This document shows, piece after piece, positions 24,001-56,900 of a stretch of 64,000 bases of DNA. Both the position numbers and the translations under genes were made by a program. The notes beneath the pieces were generated by a model, which worked only from the letters and a program-made list of their open reading frames with translations, made no database searches and was not told the origin of the DNA. Each line of letters begins with the position of its first letter. The first letter of the stretch is position 1. This stretch comes from Auanema rhodensis (Eukaryota > Animalia > Nematoda), in assembly GCA_964057225.1 (NCBI GenBank), contig CAXKVF010000094.1, forward strand, positions 62,001 through 126,000. Reading direction: 5' to 3'.

Positions 24001-24707
24001 TTAAAGTTCACGTAAATTTCAAAGTCATGGTTACCATGCACCAATATCAATAAAAATTTGTTTTTAGACTAATATGGACATGGGGAATCTAATTTTGAAA
24101 ACCGCATCTCTTTATCTTTCACGTGAAGCGAGTTACATACCAAGTGCACATCACGTGTACATTTAATTAGCATAAATTAAAGTTCACGTAAATTTCAAAG
24201 TCATGGTTACCATGAAGCAATATCAATAAAAATTTGTTTTTAGACTAATATGGACATGTGGAATCTAATTTTGAAAACCGCATCTCTTCATCTTTCACGT
24301 GAAGCGAGTTACATACCAAGTGCACATCACGTGTACATTTAATTAGCATAAATTAAAGTTCACGTAAAATTCAAAGTCATGGTTACCATGAACCAATATC
24401 AATAAAAATTTGTTTTTAGACTAATATGGACATGGGGAATCTAATTTTGAAAACCGCATCTCTTTATCTTTCACGTGAAGCGAGTTACATACCAAGTGCA
24501 CATCACGTGTACATTTAATTAGCATAAATTAAAGTTCACGTAAATTTCAAAGTCATGGTTACCATGAAGCAATATCAATAAAAATTTGTTTTTAGACTAA
24601 TATGGACATGGGGAATCTAATTTTGAAAACCGCATCTCTTTATCTTTTACGTGAAGCGAGTTACATACCAAGTGCACATCACGTGTACATTTAATTAGCA
24701 TAAATTA
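1..24707. repeat. 176-bp tandem satellite array, left block (~140 monomers)
   Basis: The opening sequence tatctttcacgtgaagcgag recurs every 176 bp (1, 177, ... 881, 1761, 2641). Monomers differ by only a few SNPs. The array stops at ...agcataaatta (24707). Confidence 0.99.
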
Positions 24708-24712
24708 GTCAA

Positions 24713-24741
24713 GGTTTATTGTTCTTTATCACAGGTTATAA
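24713..24741 (-). other. Conserved 3'-terminal motif/stem-loop of element 1 (TTATAACCTGTGAT-N3-GAACAATAAACC)
   Basis: Identical to 53937-53964 of element 2 apart from the N3 spacer. Can fold with an AACCU loop and contains AATAAA. Confidence 0.75.
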
Positions 24742-24928
24742 CAATAGCAGTTTTGAAAAAAGAAAGTGGATAAAAGAAGTTCCTTACAATATGAACATGA
24801 TTATATAAATTGATTGACATGAAAACATTAATTGTATAGAGATAAGAATAATTATTGAATCAATTATGTCAGTAGAAAATATATATTCTAAACAAGTAAA
24901 TCTATGTGTCATAGTTGTCAACCCATCC

Positions 24929-25112
24929 TTGATAAACAAGGGATTTGTTCAGTTCAAAAAATATGACCTGACCTCATTTTTACTTTTACCAGGTGCGGTG
25001 GAACTTAGAGAAAAAGTCGAGCCCGTTCTGGTAATCAGAGGTAACTATCACCAGATTCGTATGGCTAATGCCTATAGAGTCCATGGTGCAGTAACATTGT
25101 AGCAAAGGGAAC
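24929..25112 (-). other. Conserved structured RNA element in the element 1 3' UTR
   Basis: Colinear conserved blocks with 53568-53755, and stems with compensatory changes between the two elements. Confidence 0.75.
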
Positions 25113-25248: not shown

Positions 25249-28113
25249 CTAATCGCTAAGGAAAAGTTGAAGATGTTTGCGAAATTTGGGAGCTTTTTCA
25301 AGACTCACAATGTTTGATGGTATTGAATTCCAGAGTTCTATGGCTCTGTACTCGATACCTCTTCTAGTTTGAGTCTTCTGGACGTTTGGAAAATCCACAG
25401 TCCATTCGTGACGCCTTAGTGAGTGTGTGAATTTTTTGAGCTTAAAAATTTTCAAAGTATTCTCTGAAATTGGTTGTTTTATTTGGTTAAAATAAAAAAT
25501 TAAATCGAAAACTAGTCTTCTGAAAAATAACTTTTGCCCCCCTAGCAAAGACAGTTGATCTTCATAGCTCATTTTAGATCCTGAGCGCATGAAAACTGCG
25601 CGCAGAAACTTTTTTTGAACATTTTCAATCCGGTCTTTGTCTTTAGAATCTTGTGGGGACCAGATAATAGAAGCATATTCCAATATTGGTCTTATGTAAG
25701 TACAGAATAAGTTGTACATAAGAGAAGGCGATTTAGAGTAGAAACAACGTAAAATTATTTTACATTTTTTTGCTGCTTCACTTGTGATTTTGTTTATGTG
25801 GTTTGAGAAGGAGAGATTGTAATCTGTGAATACTCCAAGATCTTTGTAACAATCTACTGAAGATAGGTTAAAGTTACCAAAAGTGAAAGCGAAGTTTTCA
25901 GGATTACTAATTGGTTTATTTGACATAACCATTATTTTAGATTTAGAGATGTTAACGGCCATCCCGTTTGAGTCGCACCATAATTTTAATTGATCAAGGG
26001 CCCGCTGTAAACTAGTAGGGTTTTTGCTGTAGAGCTTCAAATCATCTGCATAGAGAATGGAGCTGACATCATTAGGAAAATCGGATGTTATGTCATTTAT
26101 GTAAAATAAAAACAACAGAGGACCAAGAACTGTACCTTGTGGTACACCACAAGTGAGTTGTTTAGGTGGTGATAAGGAATTATTGACCATAACTGAAAAA
26201 AACCTACCAGAGATGAAACTTTGGAGAAAGGAATGAAGTGGGCCTTGAATACCAATGGACTTGAGTTTTGAAAAAAGAGTAGAATGTTGTATAAGATCGA
26301 AGGCTTTTGAAAAGTCGATATAAGCTACAAAAACCGGAGTATTACAGTCCAATGATGATCTGAAAGAGATGTGGCTACTGAGAATTGCAGAAACAGTGCT
26401 TCTTTTAGGAAGGAAGGCGTGTTGATTTTGAGATATGGCACCATTGGAAATACCAAAATTAAGAAGTGGAGTACGTATTATACGTTCAAAGATTTTTGAG
26501 AGACTGGAAGTGAGTGAAATTGGGCGGTAGTTACTTGGATTTTCAGGTCGGCCCGTTTTGAAAATGGGACGAATCCAGGCTAACTTCCAATCAGGAGGAC
26601 AAGTTGAGGTAACTAACAAATTGTGAAAAATAAAAGCTAATGGATTAGCCAGAGTAAAAGCACATTGTTTAAGAAAGTAATATGGAATACCATCCGGAGA
26701 TGTGGATACCCTGAGTGGAAGACTATGAAGAGTTTTGTAGACCAATTCAGGTGTTATATCCATGAAATCAATGGTATGACTGGAAGAAGAAGAGACGGAA
26801 ACATGAGTGTTTTCCTGAGAGACAAGAGGAGAAAGAGGAGAAACCGTGAAAACCTCGGCAAATGCTGACACTTTATCAATATCTGAAGAAACTGACACAT
26901 TGTTGACAGTGAGGTTTGGAATGTCAGATGTTTTACCATTTAATCGGGCCTTACAAAAACGATAAAAAAGTTTGGAGTTTTTTAAGGCAGCAATACGCTC
27001 TTCCTCTAAAGCACAATTGATTTTTATTAGCTTGTCCAATTTTACTGAAAGATTTTTACGGCGAATCTCGTCAGATAGATATAAAGAGCAACTTAGCCTG
27101 TTAATTTGATTTCTGAGTTTTGCAATGTTACGATCCGCTTTTTTATTTTTCCTCGGTTGTTTTTTAGGAACATAAATGTCAATGATTGAATGTAGAATAG
27201 AGATAAACTTTGAATACGATTGGAGTGGAGTAAGACCTGAAAGTTCAGAACAGAAGTCGATGTTGACCAGTTGCCTATTGATACGTTCATAATCAGCCAA
27301 AAGGAAATTGCGGTCTGATAACATGGAGAGAGATGTGGGTTCAGCACTATGTAAATCTTGTAGATGAAAATTTTCAGATTTTGAAAGTATATGAAAGGTG
27401 ATGGAAAAATGATCCGAAGCCCCAAGTGGACCAGATCGCTTGATATTGTTGACACAACGAACGTTATTTGTAATTATATAGTCAAGAATATTTTCACCTC
27501 TAGTAGGAAAATTTACTAGCTGGTTTAGACAATTGTGATTGAGAAATTGGAGTAGAATTCTACTAGAAGGAGTAGGTTGAGAACATATACCAAGATCCCA
27601 GTTTATTTTAGGGAAATTAAGATCACCAGTGAGATAGAGAGACCGATTAACTAAATGATTTTGTAGATCACAAAGATAGTTTGAGAAATCTAAGCTAGAT
27701 GATGATGGAGAACGGTAACAAACAGAAAAAATAGAATTGGAAGATGTGATGAGAATATTTATAAACTGTATGGTAGATGAATTACAAGAGCAGGAAAGAA
27801 GACGAAAAGTAATATGTTTTTTGATGAAAAGTAGTACACCACCACCCCGTGATGAACATCTATCAGCCCTGAGGATATTATAGATGTCACCTAACGGAAG
27901 AAGATTAGTGTTAAATTGGGGGTAAAGCCAGGACTCTGATATAGCAATTATATCAGGAGAATTGGGAGAGATGATAACTGGGAGAAGATGAAGTTTGGTG
28001 AGAATTGAGCGTGCATTGTAACAGTGAACAGAAATGTAAGTGTGGTTAGAGACGAGAACAGGTGTTGACGATAACATTGGATCAACGAAAGGACCCGTTA
28101 TTGGACAAAACAA
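25249..28113 (-). CDS. ORF2: apurinic-like endonuclease + reverse transcriptase, intact reading frame
   Basis: EN motifs NARS, IAISESWL, RGGGV, YRSP, GDLNFP, LDY, SDH. RT motifs NYRPISLTS, QHAF, DFSKAFD, GVPQGTVLGPLLF, YADD, YKDLGV. The true N-terminus is uncertain: first ATG at 28077, or a +1 frameshift fusion at ~28088. Confidence 0.97.
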   Translation of the reverse strand: MFCPITGPFVDPMLSSTPVLVSNHTYISVHCYNARSILTKLHLLPVIISPNSPDIIAISESWLYPQFNTNLLPLGDIYNILRADRCSSRGGGVLLFIKKHITFRLLSCSCNSSTIQFINILITSSNSIFSVCYRSPSSSSLDFSNYLCDLQNHLVNRSLYLTGDLNFPKINWDLGICSQPTPSSRILLQFLNHNCLNQLVNFPTRGENILDYIITNNVRCVNNIKRSGPLGASDHFSITFHILSKSENFHLQDLHSAEPTSLSMLSDRNFLLADYERINRQLVNIDFCSELSGLTPLQSYSKFISILHSIIDIYVPKKQPRKNKKADRNIAKLRNQINRLSCSLYLSDEIRRKNLSVKLDKLIKINCALEEERIAALKNSKLFYRFCKARLNGKTSDIPNLTVNNVSVSSDIDKVSAFAEVFTVSPLSPLVSQENTHVSVSSSSSHTIDFMDITPELVYKTLHSLPLRVSTSPDGIPYYFLKQCAFTLANPLAFIFHNLLVTSTCPPDWKLAWIRPIFKTGRPENPSNYRPISLTSSLSKIFERIIRTPLLNFGISNGAISQNQHAFLPKRSTVSAILSSHISFRSSLDCNTPVFVAYIDFSKAFDLIQHSTLFSKLKSIGIQGPLHSFLQSFISGRFFSVMVNNSLSPPKQLTCGVPQGTVLGPLLFLFYINDITSDFPNDVSSILYADDLKLYSKNPTSLQRALDQLKLWCDSNGMAVNISKSKIMVMSNKPISNPENFAFTFGNFNLSSVDCYKDLGVFTDYNLSFSNHINKITSEAAKKCKIILRCFYSKSPSLMYNLFCTYIRPILEYASIIWSPQDSKDKDRIENVQKKFLRAVFMRSGSKMSYEDQLSLLGGQKLFFRRLVFDLIFYFNQIKQPISENTLKIFKLKKFTHSLRRHEWTVDFPNVQKTQTRRGIEYRAIELWNSIPSNIVSLEKAPKFRKHLQLFLSD
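28082..28093 (-). promoter_or_regulatory. Putative +1 ribosomal frameshift site UCC_UUU_CGU_UGA at the ORF1/ORF2 junction
   Basis: In ORF1 frame; ORF2 is open in the +1 frame across it; the same 9 nt are conserved in element 2. Confidence 0.7.
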
Positions 28114-50656: not shown

Positions 50657-53477
50657 CACTGTCACGTCTTCAACCCCCCCTGTCTCACATCCTACCAGCC
50701 TCTCAGTTCAGTGTCTTAATGCACGTTCTATTCTTAACAAACTTCATATACTATCCCACGTTATTTCTTTATCCACTCCTGATATAATTGCAATATCAGA
50801 ATCATGGCTTTTTCCTGAGTTCGATACCCACCTACTCCCATGTAAACATACTTACACTATTTTTAGAGCCGATAGGTGTCTCTCACGTGGTGGTGGTGTT
50901 GTCCTCTATATTAAAAGTCATATCAAACCTTTTCTTCTTTCCTGTTCTTCTCCTCAATCTTCTATACAATTCATTAACTTACTCATACCTTCACTTAATG
51001 CTGTTTTCTCACTTTGTTATCGTCCTCCAACAGCTTCTCATTCAGATTTCATTTCGTTTCTTTCTGATCTACGTAAACAAATTTCCAAACGATCGTTCTT
51101 CCTAACGGGCGATCTTAATTTTCCTAAAATCAACTGGGACCTCGGTATTTGCTCTCAACCATGCTCCTCTAGTAGATCTATTCTTCAATTTCTTAACGAT
51201 AGCTGTTCTCATCAGTTGGTAAAGTTCCCTACCAGAGGCAAGAACATTCTTGATTATGTTATCACTGATAACATATCCAGTGTAGGCAACATATCCCGTT
51301 CTTCCCCCCTCGGCTCCTCGGATCACCATTCTGTGGTTTTCCAAATTGTTTCAGACTCTTTTCAGTTAGCTAATACAATCAGCTCTTCTAATACTTTGTC
51401 TCCGGTAGCATTACCTATGTTTTCTGATCGCAATTTTCAAGCTGCTGACTACAATCTCATCAATCATAGACTAGCCAAAATTGATTTCGCTAATCATCTC
51501 TCCGGTCTCACTCCTTTAGATTCTTACTCTAAACTTGTTCACATTCTTCACTCGGTCATTGATAGCTGCGTTCCCAAAAAACAAGAAAGAAGAAAAAAGA
51601 AGATTGACCGAGATATTTTAAAACTCTCATCTCATATAAAAAAACTCAGTTGTTCTTATCATCATCATGATGAATCTCGTCGTAAAAAACTTTCACATTC
51701 TCTTGATAAACTTATCAAGAATAGATTGGCTTTGGAAGAGGAACGTATTGCCAACTATAATAATTCAAAACTTCTTTACCGCTTTTGCAGAACCCGTTTG
51801 GGTGGCAGCACTTCAGATATCCCAAATCTCAAAATAGATAATGATTCTGTTTCGTCTGATTCTGACAAAGCTTCTATCTTTGCTACTACCTTCTCTGTTC
51901 GCCCCCTTCCTATCTCTCTACCACATGCTCCTCATTCCTTTTCTTCTACTATTATCGACTTTATTGATGTCTCCCCTCTCAACGTTCACAAAATTCTCTG
52001 TCAGTTACCTCTTCGGGTATCAACATCCCCAGACGGAATCCCTTATTTCTTCCTAAAAAATTGTGCTTCTACTCTCTCTCAGCCTCTGGCCTTTGTTTTC
52101 CACAATCTACTTGTTTCCTCCTCTTGCCCTCCTGACTGGAAAACAGCTTGGATTCGTCCCGTTCATAAATCAGGACTTTCTTCTAACCCGGCTAATTATC
52201 GTCCTATTTCTCTCACATCCAGTCTATCTAAAGTTTTTGAACGTCTCCTTCGTTCACCTCTTCTTGACTTTGGTATTTCCTCCGGCTTTATTTCTCCTAA
52301 TCAGTTTGCTTTTCTTCCAAAACGCAATACTGTATCAGCAATTCTTAGTAGTCATGTTCTCTGGAGATCTGCTGTAGACAAGAAAAAACCTGTTTATGTT
52401 GCCTTTATTGACTTTTCTAAGGTTTTTGATCTCATAAATCATTCCGTTCTGTTAGCTAAATTAAAATCAATTGGCATTGCCGGCTGTATTCTCACTTTTC
52501 TCAAAAACTTCATTACTAATAGATCTTTCTCTGTATTAGTTAATTACTCTCTATCCGTCACAAATTCTTTGCCCTGTGGAGTTCCACAGGGGACAGTACT
52601 GGGTCCTCTTCTTTTTTTATTTTATATAAATGATATTACATCAAATTTACCTGATGATGTACATCCAACTCTTTATGCAGACGATCTTAAACTAAGCAGC
52701 ACAAATCCGGTAAGTTTACAACTAGCTTTGAATATTCTCAAAAACTGGTGTCTATCTAACGGTATGAAAGTTAATACTTCCAAATCCAAAGTTATGATTA
52801 TATCGAGTACCACTACACCAAGAACAAACACAATTTTCAAATTTGGAGACATTTCTTTAGCTACAGTATCATCATATAAAGATCTAGGTGTGTGTACAGA
52901 CTATAATCTCTCTTTTAACAGTCATATAGACAGAATTTCTAACATTGCTGCTCACAAATGTCGTGTTATTTTGCGTTGTTTTTACTCAAGATCACCAACT
53001 TTGATGTTCAAACTTTTTTGCTGCTATATCCGACCAATTTTAGAATATGCTTCAGTTGTATGGTCTCCTCAGAATAACAAAGATAAAGCGCGCATTGAGT
53101 CTGTCCAAAAAAAGTTTTTAAACGCTATTTTTAAGAGAGCCGAAATAGCTTTGGATTACAAGAACCAGCTATTGTTTCTTGGAGCCGAGGAGCTAACGTT
53201 TAGAAGACTACTAATTGATCTCGTTTTTTATCATAATCAGATTACTAAAAATGTTCCAGAAAACAACCTTAACTTTTTTACTACCAAGCACTATGCTCAT
53301 TCACTACGTAGACATCTATGGAATGTTGAATACCCTGATCTTTGGAAGAGCGAAACAAGAACTGGAATAGAATACAGAGCTATTCAAATCTGGAACACAC
53401 TCCCTGAAAACATCGTTCAACTAAGAAACACTTCCAGCTTCAGAAAACATCTTTCTATTAATCTTAACAATATTTAA
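50610..53477 (+). CDS. ORF2 of element 2: APE endonuclease + reverse transcriptase (stop-to-stop frame; the track start at 51216 is an internal TTG)
   Basis: Manual translation upstream of 51216 is stop-free back to TGA 50607-50609 and gives CLNARSIL...IIAISESWL...RGGGV...CYRPP...GDLNFP. RT motifs GVPQGTVLGPLLF and YADD are present. Confidence 0.95.
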   Translation, partial: TIHLNVSRLTKCPFVNTVTSSTPPVSHPTSLSVQCLNARSILNKLHILSHVISLSTPDIIAISESWLFPEFDTHLLPCKHTYTIFRADRCLSRGGGVVLYIKSHIKPFLLSCSSPQSSIQFINLLIPSLNAVFSLCYRPPTASHSDFISFLSDLRKQISKRSFFLTGDLNFPKINWDLGICSQPCSSSRSILQFLNDSCSHQLVKFPTRGKNILDYVITDNISSVGNISRSSPLGSSDHHSVVFQIVSDSFQLANTISSSNTLSPVALPMFSDRNFQAADYNLINHRLAKIDFANHLSGLTPLDSYSKLVHILHSVIDSCVPKKQERRKKKIDRDILKLSSHIKKLSCSYHHHDESRRKKLSHSLDKLIKNRLALEEERIANYNNSKLLYRFCRTRLGGSTSDIPNLKIDNDSVSSDSDKASIFATTFSVRPLPISLPHAPHSFSSTIIDFIDVSPLNVHKILCQLPLRVSTSPDGIPYFFLKNCASTLSQPLAFVFHNLLVSSSCPPDWKTAWIRPVHKSGLSSNPANYRPISLTSSLSKVFERLLRSPLLDFGISSGFISPNQFAFLPKRNTVSAILSSHVLWRSAVDKKKPVYVAFIDFSKVFDLINHSVLLAKLKSIGIAGCILTFLKNFITNRSFSVLVNYSLSVTNSLPCGVPQGTVLGPLLFLFYINDITSNLPDDVHPTLYADDLKLSSTNPVSLQLALNILKNWCLSNGMKVNTSKSKVMIISSTTTPRTNTIFKFGDISLATVSSYKDLGVCTDYNLSFNSHIDRISNIAAHKCRVILRCFYSRSPTLMFKLFCCYIRPILEYASVVWSPQNNKDKARIESVQKKFLNAIFKRAEIALDYKNQLLFLGAEELTFRRLLIDLVFYHNQITKNVPENNLNFFTTKHYAHSLRRHLWNVEYPDLWKSETRTGIEYRAIQIWNTLPENIVQLRNTSSFRKHLSINLNNI
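50645..50656 (+). promoter_or_regulatory. Putative +1 ribosomal frameshift site UCC_UUU_CGU_UAA
   Basis: In ORF1 frame; ORF2 is open in the +1 frame from 50610 and has no ATG before the end of the EN domain. Confidence 0.7.
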
Positions 53478-53567: not shown

Positions 53568-53755
53568 GTTCCCTAGTTTACCTCTGAGACCTGTTACTAC
53601 GTATTTTATCCTATAGACATTAGTCATACGGATAGAACGATAGTTACCTCTTGCTGTCAGAACGGGCTTGACTCACATCAAGAGTTCCACCGTACCTGTC
53701 AGAATACTATAGAGGTCAGTGATCTACACTGAACAAATCAACTCTTCTTTATCAA
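53568..53755 (+). other. Conserved structured RNA element in the element 2 3' UTR
   Basis: Homologous to 24929-25112 (minus), with covarying stems. Confidence 0.75.
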
Positions 53756-53936
53756 ACTAGAACTGTTTCGAAACCTTAACAAACAAGTAGTGCTGCTCGC
53801 TATCATTGTAAAAGAAAATATGCTGAACCTGTTTCTTGTACATATATTTTTTTAGTCAATTATTACAAGTATGTTTGTATTGTAAGGTTCTTTTGAATAT
53901 CTGCAATTTTCCCGATTTATTAACCTTGTTTTCCGA

Positions 53937-53964
53937 TTATAACCTGTGATTCGAACAATAAACC
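53937..53964 (+). other. Conserved 3'-terminal motif/stem-loop of element 2
   Basis: TTATAACCTGTGATTCGAACAATAAACC, matching the element 1 3' end. Confidence 0.75.
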
Positions 53965-53971
53965 CGTTCAA

Positions 53972-56900
53972 ACGTGTACATTTAATTAGCATAAATTAAA
54001 GTTCACGTAAATTTCAAAGTCATGGTTACCATGAACCAATATCAATAAAAATTTGTTTTTAGACTAATATGGACATGGGGAATCTAATTTTGAAAACCGC
54101 ATCTCTTTATCTTTCACGTGAAGCGAGTTACATACCAAGTGCACATCACGTGTACATTTAATTAGCATAAATTAAAGTTCACGTAAAATTCAAAGTCATG
54201 GTTACCATGCACCAATATCAATAAAAATTTGTTTTTAGACTAATATGGACATTGGGAATCTAATTTTGAAAACCGCATCTCTTTATCTTTTACGTGAAGC
54301 GAGTTACATACCAAGTGCACATCACGTGTACATTTAATTAGCATAAATTAAAGTTCACGTAAATTTCAAAGTCATGGTTACCATGCACCAATATCATTAA
54401 AAATTTGTTTTTAGACTAATATGGACATGGGGAATCTAATTTTGAAAACCGCATCTCTTTATCTTTCACGTGAAGCGAGTTACATACCAAGTGCACATCA
54501 CGTGTACATTTAATTAGCATAAATTAAAGTTCACGTAAATTTCAAAGTCATGGTTACCATGAACCAATATCAATAAAAATTTGTTTTTAGACTAATATGG
54601 ACATGGGGAATCTAATTTTGAAAACCGCATCTCTTTATCTTTCACGTGAAGCGAGTTACATACCAAGTGCACATCACGTGTACATTTAATTAGCATAAAT
54701 TAAAGTTCACGTAAATTTCAAAGTCGTGGTTACCATGCACCAATATCAATAAAAATTCGTTTTTAGACTAATATGGACATGGGGAATCTAATTTTGAAAA
54801 CCGCATCTCTTTATCTTTCACGTGAAGCGAGTTACATACCAAGTGCACATCACGTGTACATTTAATTAGCATAAATTAAAGTTCACGTAAATTTCAAAGT
54901 CATGGTTACCATGAACCAATATCAATTAAAATTTGTTTTTAGACTAATATGGACATGGGGAATCTAATTTTGAAAACCGTATCTCTTTATCTTTCACGTG
55001 AAGCGAGTTACATACCAAGTGCACATCACGTGTACATTTAATTAGCATAAATTAAAGTTCACGTAAATTTCAAAGTCATGGTTACCATGAACCAATATCA
55101 ATAAAAATTTGTTTTTAGACTAATATGGACATGGGCAATCTAATTTTGAAAACCGCATCTCTTTATCTTTCACGTGAAGCGAGTTACATACCAAGTGCAC
55201 ATCACGTGTACATTTAATTAGCATAAATTAAAGTTCACGTAAATTTCAAAGTCATGGTTACCATGCACCAATATCAATAAAAATTTGTTTTTAGACTAAT
55301 ATGGACATAGGGAATCTAATTTTGAAAACCGCATCTCTTCATCTTTCACGTGAAGCGAGTTACATACCAAGTGCACATCACGTCTAAATTTAATTAGCAT
55401 AAATTAAAGTTCACGAAAATTTCAAAGTCATGGTTACCATGAACCAATATCAATAAAAATTTGTTTTTAGACTAATATGGACATGGGCAATCTAATTTTG
55501 AAAACCGCATCTCTTTATCTTTCACGTGAAGCGAGTTACATACCAAGTGCACATCACGTGTACATTTAATTAGCATAAATTAAAGTTCACGTAAATTTCA
55601 AAGTCATGGTTACCATGCACCAATATCAATAAAAATTTGTTTTTAGACTAATATGGACATGGGGAATCTAATTTTGAAAACCGCATCTCTTCATCTTTCA
55701 CGTGAAGCGAGTTACATACCAAGTGCACATCACGTGTACATTTAATTAGCATAAATTAAAGTTCACGTAAATTTCAAAGTCATGGTTACCATGAACCAAT
55801 ATCAATAAAAATTTGTTTTTAGACTAATATGGACATGGGGAATCTCATTTTAAAAACCGCATCTCTTTATCTTTCACGTGAAGCGAGTTACATACCAAGT
55901 GCACATCACGTGTACATTTAATTAGCATAAATTAAAGTTCACGTAAATTTCAAAGTCATGGTTACCATGCACCAATATCAATAAAAATTTGTTTTTAGAC
56001 TAATATGGACATGGGGAATCTAATTTTGAAAACCGCATCTCTTTATCTTTCACGTGAAGCGAGTTACATACCAAGTGCACCTCACGTGTACATTTAATTA
56101 GCATAAATCAAAGTTCACGTAAATTTCAAAGTCATGGTTACCATGCACCAATATCAATAAAAATTTGTTTTTAGACTAATATGGACATGGGGAATCTAAT
56201 TTTGAAAACCGCATCTCTTTATCTTTCACGTGAAGCGAGTTACATACCAAGTGCACATCACGTGTACATTTAATTAGCATAAATTAAAGTTCACGTAAAT
56301 TTCAAAGTCATGGTTACCATGAACCAATATCAATAAAAATTTGTTTTTAGACAAATATGGACATGGGGAATCTAATTTTGAAAACCGCATCTCTTTATCT
56401 TTCACGTGAAGCGAGTTACATACCAAGTGCACATCACGTGTACATTTAATTAGCATAAATTAAAGTTCACGTAAATTTCAAAGTCATGGTTACCATGCAC
56501 CAATATCAATAAAAATTTGTTTTTAGACTAATATGGACATGGGGAATCTAATTTTGAAAACCGCATCTCTTTATCTTTCACGTGAAGCGAGTTACATACC
56601 AAGTGCACATCACGTGTACATTTAATTAGCATAAATTAAAGTTCACGTAAATTTCAAAGTCATGGTTACCATGCACCAATATCAATAAAAATTTGTTTTT
56701 AGACTAATATGGACATGGGGAATCTAATTTTGAAAACCGCATCTCTTCATCTTTCACGTGAAGCGAGTTACATACCAAGTGCACATCAAGTGTACATTTA
56801 ATTAGCATAAATTAAAGTTCACGTAAATTTCAAAGTCATGGTTACCATGCACCAATATCAATAAAAATTTGTTTTTAGACTAATATGGACATGGGGAATC

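Follow-up and report, generated by a model that had tools for sequence, protein, structure and literature searches.

A four-way-junction RNA domain kept by compensatory change in the 3' UTR of APE-type LINEs from the nematode Auanema rhodensis

The 3' UTRs of two LINEs in the Auanema rhodensis genome share a block of about 150 nt that folds as a four-way junction, and the evidence supports its being a structured RNA kept by compensatory change above a phylogeny-aware null. Our preferred reading, held with moderate confidence, is that the block acts in cis as a structured domain of the LINE transcript, most likely as a binding site for the element's own protein. The window, which is the whole stretch of 64,000 nucleotides that was analysed, holds two non-LTR retrotransposons on opposite strands, each embedded in satellite. 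Their main features are as follows.

51216..53477, + strand: ORF2 of the family A element (reverse transcriptase part as listed; Pfam RVT_1, E 9.9e-33)
53592..53739, + strand: four-way-junction RNA domain, family A, 148 nt (covariance model R1, 166.2 bits)
53871..53963, + strand: second conserved island at the element's end, AUGUUY.UAUUGUAAGG ... AACCUGUGAU..GAACAAUAAAC (64-74% identity between deep families)
25249..28113, - strand: ORF2 of the family F element, with APE endonuclease and reverse transcriptase (Pfam Exo_endo_phos_2 and RVT_1)
24942..25096, - strand: four-way-junction RNA domain, family F, 155 nt (covariance model R1, 161.1 bits)
24714..24798, - strand: the same terminal island in the family F element, from the alignment of element ends

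In the genome search, the + strand ORF2 (51216..53477) belongs to an open frame of 955 aa, and its stop codon lies 114 nt ahead of the domain. The corresponding distance for the - strand ORF2 (25249..28113) is 152 nt. The two ORF2 proteins are 61% identical to each other. No Pfam domain was found in ORF1, which returned just weak coiled-coil-like matches. BLAST searches of the 180.9-Mb assembly (112 contigs, none with signs of human contamination), with both domain copies as queries, recovered seven families, here called A to G, whose ORF2 parts are 61-93% identical to those of the window elements. Families A-D and E-G form two deep clades. Within families, identity between copies is mostly 98-100%, and an open ORF2 of about 955 aa is retained in many of them, which implies that the elements are young.

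A sequence-only reading of the window had proposed that the two UTRs do not align except for one multi-helix block of about 185 nt (188 nt in one element, 184 nt in the other), located some 210 nt upstream of the 3' end. The shared block is real, and every shared motif listed for it is present in both window copies, as judged by direct reading and by alignment. The unit itself is shorter, however, at 148 and 155 nt, and the first 24 nt of the block as proposed are kept in close families only. Boundaries drawn from the added copies place its start at UGUUACU and its end at CUGAACAA. The UTRs are indeed unalignable elsewhere in the alignment, apart from the second island at the 3' end. The position of the domain is internal to the UTR, as claimed, but its end was measured at 224-228 nt ahead of the conserved element end ...GAACAAUAAAC, and the true 3' end of the element lies about 6-8 nt further on. 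The domain is also larger than a terminal stem-loop, again as had been suggested, forming a closed junction of about 150 nt. A protein-coding origin for the block was considered and rejected: no stop-free frame is common to all seven families on either strand, and the lengths across families (148-155 nt) differ by amounts that are not multiples of three.

The fold was derived from a sequence-only MAFFT alignment, A2, of 21 distinct domain sequences from the seven families. The RNAalifold consensus of this alignment is a four-way junction of 42 pairs, in which a closing helix, P1, and three arms surround the junction together with one unpaired U. Coordinates below are those of the family A copy.

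53592..53595, + strand: P1 5' strand, UGUU, with its partner AACA at 53732-53735; closes the junction and is invariant in 21 of 21 sequences
53596..53644, + strand: Arm I (A2 columns 5-54), with five pairs showing compensatory change
53646..53716, + strand: Arm II (A2 columns 56-129), with four pairs showing compensatory change
53717..53731, + strand: Arm III (A2 columns 130-150), a CAG/CUG stem and a variable, covarying hairpin, with two pairs showing compensatory change

Arm I begins with an invariant ACU/AGU and continues through a covarying helix (found as CGU/ACG, CGUC/GACG, CACC(A)/(U)GGUG and UGC/GCG) and an internal loop to the hairpin UAU-GRC AUUA GYC-AUA. Arm II is longer, and runs from an invariant ACCUC/GAGGU through a covarying 7-bp helix, an invariant AA/YAC loop and CGG/CCG to a distal part, where an invariant GCU.../...CCA loop is followed by the hairpin GACUY/RAGUU with its variable loop. 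The majority of the invariant unpaired bases are in Arm II. Over the alignment, 55 of the 84 paired columns and 17 of the 74 unpaired columns are invariant, and the invariant set comprises the junction core and the Arm II internal loops, together with the AUU in the loop of Arm I. The helix pairs noted previously are all present in both copies; the closing UGUU/AACA helix was missing from that list. Folding of single sequences gives similar results. The family A copy in the window has an MFE of -42.6 kcal/mol (z -3.4), the MFE fold of the family F copy has the same architecture, and in five of the seven families the single-sequence MFE structure is close to the consensus architecture.

Differences between the two window copies had been described beforehand as mostly pair-preserving, and this holds. 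From one copy to the other, GAC/GUC replaces GGC/GCC around the AUUA loop, CGU/ACG replaces CACCA/UGGUG, UAUCC/GGAUA replaces GAcUC/GAaUC, GACUC/GAGUU replaces GACUU/AAGUU, and CUGUCAG/CUGUCAG, with a central U-U, replaces UUACCAG/CUGGUAA. ACCUC/GAGGU is invariant, and the CAG...CUG hairpin occurs in both. The deeper alignment of 21 sequences from seven families likewise shows covariation, both in RNAalifold and under two controls. RNAalifold reports compensatory changes in 11 of the 42 pairs of A2. Of the 882 cells, 97.6% are standard pairs; shifting the 3' partners by 1-3 columns lowers this share to 27.6-38.7%. A free pairwise covariation scan was discarded, since the deep split between A-D and E-G makes many unrelated columns appear to covary; per-pair covariation statistics are not trustworthy given two deep clades. 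A tree-aware null was therefore used instead, in which the 134 substitutions inferred by parsimony were re-dealt, branch by branch, to random columns carrying the same base, in 1000 simulations. The null yielded 73.3 +/- 2.6% paired cells (maximum 82.0) against the 97.6% observed, 3.0 +/- 1.7 compensatory pairs (maximum 10) against 11, and 10.9 +/- 7.2 compensatory cells (maximum 41) against 74. None of the 1000 simulations attained the observed value for paired cells or for compensatory pairs.

Inspection of the alignment shows that the compensatory changes are spread over several branches. Columns 10/48, 27/34 and 85/93 changed at the deep split, 20/41 and 67/111 on the branch leading to F and G, 69/109 together with the Arm III pairs on the branch to D, and 65/113 on the branch to A-C. 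Even within the young family A, columns 11/47 occur as U-A, C.A and C-G. The folded strand is the sense RNA, as follows from the 32 G-U cells found against only 3 A-C cells. Folding energy was not decisive for the strand, the antisense fold being slightly better (-34.0 vs -30.1 kcal/mol), and the call was made on the G-U and A-C counts.

Conservation was measured as global identity between deep families, region by region, with the following outcome.

Last 900 nt of ORF2: 64-69%
UTR spacer ahead of the domain: 50-59%
Domain: 66-82%
UTR spacer past the domain: 47-58%
Terminal island: 64-74%

The two spacers, at around 50%, are at the level of random identity, whereas the domain and the terminal island match or exceed the conservation of the coding sequence. 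The grouping of families in a tree of the domain is the same as the grouping by ORF2 identities, which implies that the block was inherited with the element and was not recently exchanged. The terminal island was found in all seven families. Complementarity between the two halves of the island, AUGUUY.UAUUG..AGG and CCU.GUGAU..GAACAAU, would give a long-range stem with a short 3' tail beyond it, and RNAalifold pairs the two blocks. RNAalifold detects no covariation in this pairing, so the terminal stem is a putative one. Both the junction domain and the terminal island are closed by UGUU.../...GAACAA.

A search of the genome with covariance model R1, for which A2 served as the input alignment, gave at least 149 full-length matches, with scores from 167.8 to 54.9 bits and all E-values at most 4e-8. 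Linkage to ORF2 was assessed by searching the genome with the last 299 aa of that protein. Among the matches listed, which form at least 17 score groups, every group but one has an ORF2 end on the same strand, 100-300 nt upstream, and the linked groups include ORF2 ends that are 45-47% identical (60-78 bits) and 62-63% identical (65-70 bits). The domain is therefore a constant part of the elements in a broad LINE lineage, comprising well over a dozen families. The exception consists of about 33 full-length matches (75-92 bits), among those listed, that have no ORF2 C-terminus of the LINE lineage upstream. Examples in the A. rhodensis assembly (G000) are C1:7512582 and 17253714; C5:9478289 and 9483046; C6:14665337/14671885/14677570; and C4:18813559 and 18824966, with some 25 more. 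These matches are scattered inside chromosomes, several of them as same-strand pairs 3.4-6.5 kb apart. Integrase (rve) matches, scored for 150 of 406 candidates, show no constant offset to them.

The flanks of the elements display a pattern of their own. Families A, B, C and E adjoin satellite in one orientation, beside ACGTGTACATTT; for families F and G the orientation is the opposite one, beside TAATTTATGC. Between ...AAUAAAC and the satellite are 6-8 variable bases (window positions 24600-24713 and 53964-54100; loci L002, L032 and L058). One family D copy, L020, has non-satellite flanking DNA, and about 25-100 nt past its 3' end is a sequence, GGCCGGTTAGTAGTTGG...GGGGAATCCCGGGTGGCG, with a faint resemblance to tRNA, where ARAGORN predicts no gene. 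Family D copies truncated 136 nt ahead of the domain recur every 1351-1703 bp (L027-L029, G000:C4:2668339-2674499), and longer copies recur every 3.3-3.5 kb (G000:C3:10704578-10714751). These recurring copies are LINE tails amplified within tandem repeats.

Searches against known RNAs returned no assignment. With Rfam 15, the window as a whole had no match at gathering scores, and the surroundings of the two copies, searched at E up to 10, had matches at chance level only, so that neither copy was assigned to a family catalogued there. The R2 3' UTR model (R2_retro_el) failed to match in either of these searches. The initial impression that the block contains no hammerhead or HDV core is borne out, as the hammerhead, HDV-like, twister, twister-sister, hatchet, pistol, hairpin, VS and xrRNA models all fail to match either copy at E up to 10. 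A tRNA or tRNA-like identity was rejected after ARAGORN found no tRNA-like gene in four domain-bearing loci (L002, L032, L020 and L030). Two exact-pattern scans of metagenome contigs were blank; the first means little because its pattern was too strict, matching only the closest families within the genome itself. In these collections, which exclude this genome and close ones, the nearest protein relatives of ORF2 do not exceed 35% identity. Two distant LINEs (28-30% ORF2 identity) have 3' flanks of 600 nt or more, and both lack the domain; the other relatives have 54-156 nt of flank or no DNA. A literature search found no paper describing such a domain.

The reading that we favour takes the four-way junction, with its invariant core and covarying outer helices, as a protein-binding domain, inherited vertically with ORF2 across a whole APE-type LINE lineage in this genome. 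ORF2p, perhaps together with ORF1p, would bind the domain in its own RNA, the invariant junction and loops probably serving as the contact surface and the covarying outer helices as scaffolding. Domain and terminal island may then jointly pick out the RNA and set it in place as the template of target-primed reverse transcription (TPRT), with the terminal island presenting the 3' end to the active site. This reading is drawn from analogy with R2 and with zebrafish L2. R2 selects and positions its TPRT template through a structured 3' UTR, upstream of the 3' end, to which its protein binds selectively (PMC11194090, PMC10499050), and the ORF2 of zebrafish L2 binds the stem-loop of its cognate 3' tail (PMC4176376). 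Against a handle for the element's own protein are the location of the domain, which is about 225 nt from the 3' end rather than at it, the invariance of the core and internal loops across ORF2s only 61% identical, which fits a conserved host partner equally well, and the matches, about 33 among those listed, that lack an ORF2 C-terminus of the lineage upstream.

The last two of these points are also what would be expected of a portable module read by a host protein, which might serve the nuclear export, stability or germline localisation of an intronless transcript, or help it to evade silencing. Such a module would resemble in its action the constitutive transport elements known from simple retroviruses, and unrelated retroelements could have it in common. 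The junction core and 17 unpaired bases are indeed invariant while ORF2 has diverged to 61%, the fold is kept down to 45% ORF2 identity, and the roughly 33 full-length matches without a lineage ORF2 end, among the matches listed, could be read in the same way. The domain tree nevertheless follows ORF2, with no sign of swapping among the seven families, and conserved parts of ORF2p explain the invariance equally well; we regard a host-read module as possible but unlikely. A similarly tentative standing goes to the wider proposal that unrelated retroelements (LINEs together with an LTR element, or a non-coding rider) have the fold in common as a portable RNA module, which would be either read by a host factor or used as a nuclease stop that gives a short, retrotransposable 3' RNA from the 5' edge. 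If true, retroelements would share an RNA signal of a new class, in a genome from which two thirds of the germline DNA is eliminated. That the domain might process itself or stall a nuclease, as a new ribozyme or an exoribonuclease-resistant fold releasing a short RNA from its 5' edge, is suggested by the positions of some truncated copies. About 16 independent 5' truncations fall within 1450 nt, and two of them are at the 5' edge of the domain. The family G copies L054:1509-1662(-), L055 and L056 (G000:C79) start exactly at UGUUACU, directly against satellite, and the family F copy L036:1514-1668(-) (G000:C6) starts at -17 after an A-run, with the segment from -17 to +4 copied twice. Edge truncations of this kind have a chance of about 2% under uniform truncation, counted post hoc, and the unpaired bases of the internal loops are highly conserved. 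The argument, though, is built on just two events noticed post hoc, the other truncations are scattered, with at least one inside the domain (L057), and the searches at E up to 10 gave no match to any known ribozyme or xrRNA model. We consider this explanation improbable.

We would give only a slim chance to an origin of the block by capture of a cellular non-coding RNA or of a SINE core, or to its being an element that works as DNA, such as an internal promoter or a protein-binding site. Its sequence motifs are long and invariant, and the antisense strand folds about equally well by energy (-34.0 vs -30.1 kcal/mol). No Rfam family or tRNA matches it, however, the compensatory changes preserve a pairing that a site in duplex DNA would not need, and the 32 G-U against 3 A-C cells favour a sense RNA. 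Near-identical copies within families, lying in satellite arrays that homogenise, could also be taken to mean that the similarity reflects nothing but recent recombination or gene conversion between LINE families, with no function attached. This is very improbable, in that outer helices and loops have diverged between families with pairing retained, and the domain tree reproduces the ORF2 grouping while the adjacent UTR is at random-level identity.

Several known systems bear comparison with the domain. The 3' UTR RNA of R2, a site-specific non-LTR element, in Bombyx and in birds (PMC11194090, PMC10499050) is, like the domain, a multi-helix RNA located upstream of the very 3' end, and in both cases the outer helices keep structure more than sequence. 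R2, however, has a restriction-like endonuclease and a pseudoknotted fold, whereas the elements described here have an APE endonuclease and a four-way junction. The hosts are distinct in kind as well: an R2-type host would have the restriction-like endonuclease and an insertion in 28S rDNA, and here ORF2 carries Exo_endo_phos_2 (APE-type) and the flanks are satellite. Protein binding has been shown for R2, and for the present domain we infer it. The stringent 3' tails of the L2 clade, exemplified by eel UnaL2 and zebrafish ZfL2 (PMC4176376), resemble the candidate handle in being cis-acting 3' UTR RNAs of APE-type LINEs, which the cognate ORF2 recognises without dependence on poly(A). Each of those tails consists of one short stem-loop at the extreme 3' end with short repeats after it, in contrast to a 150-nt junction with three arms about 225 nt upstream. 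No terminal tandem repeats were seen at the element ends in A. rhodensis. The terminal island may be the direct counterpart of the L2-clade 3' stem-loop.

Constitutive transport elements and RNA transport elements, known from retroviruses and IAP retroelements, are, like the domain, structured RNAs in the 3' part of unspliced transcripts, with a size of 150-230 nt and invariant internal-loop bases. In these transport elements a protein reads the bases, and host export factors are bound. Their fold differs from that of the domain, and there is no similarity in sequence or model, such that the analogy is a functional one only. The central domains of SINE superfamilies (PMC11481361) are, like the domain, conserved non-coding blocks of retroposons that persist across long divergence with function unknown. 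SINE central domains are defined in SINEs and across phyla, whereas the present domain sits behind the ORF2 of autonomous LINEs, is known from a single genome and has explicit covariation.

The domain is best read as an uncatalogued addition to the structured 3' UTR handles of non-LTR retrotransposons, with a probable function suggested by these analogies. To our knowledge, defined RNA handles exist for few non-LTR retrotransposons only, namely R2, L2-type elements and SART1. Known handles now serve to steer RNA-templated gene insertion. The candidate handle is a compact and well-delimited domain of 150 nt, with an explicit fold and natural compensatory variants from many families. Its host elements are young and apparently site-specific LINEs of the APE type, which makes template recognition directly testable in a large LINE group, and the covariance model can be used to annotate such elements along with the riders that borrow them.
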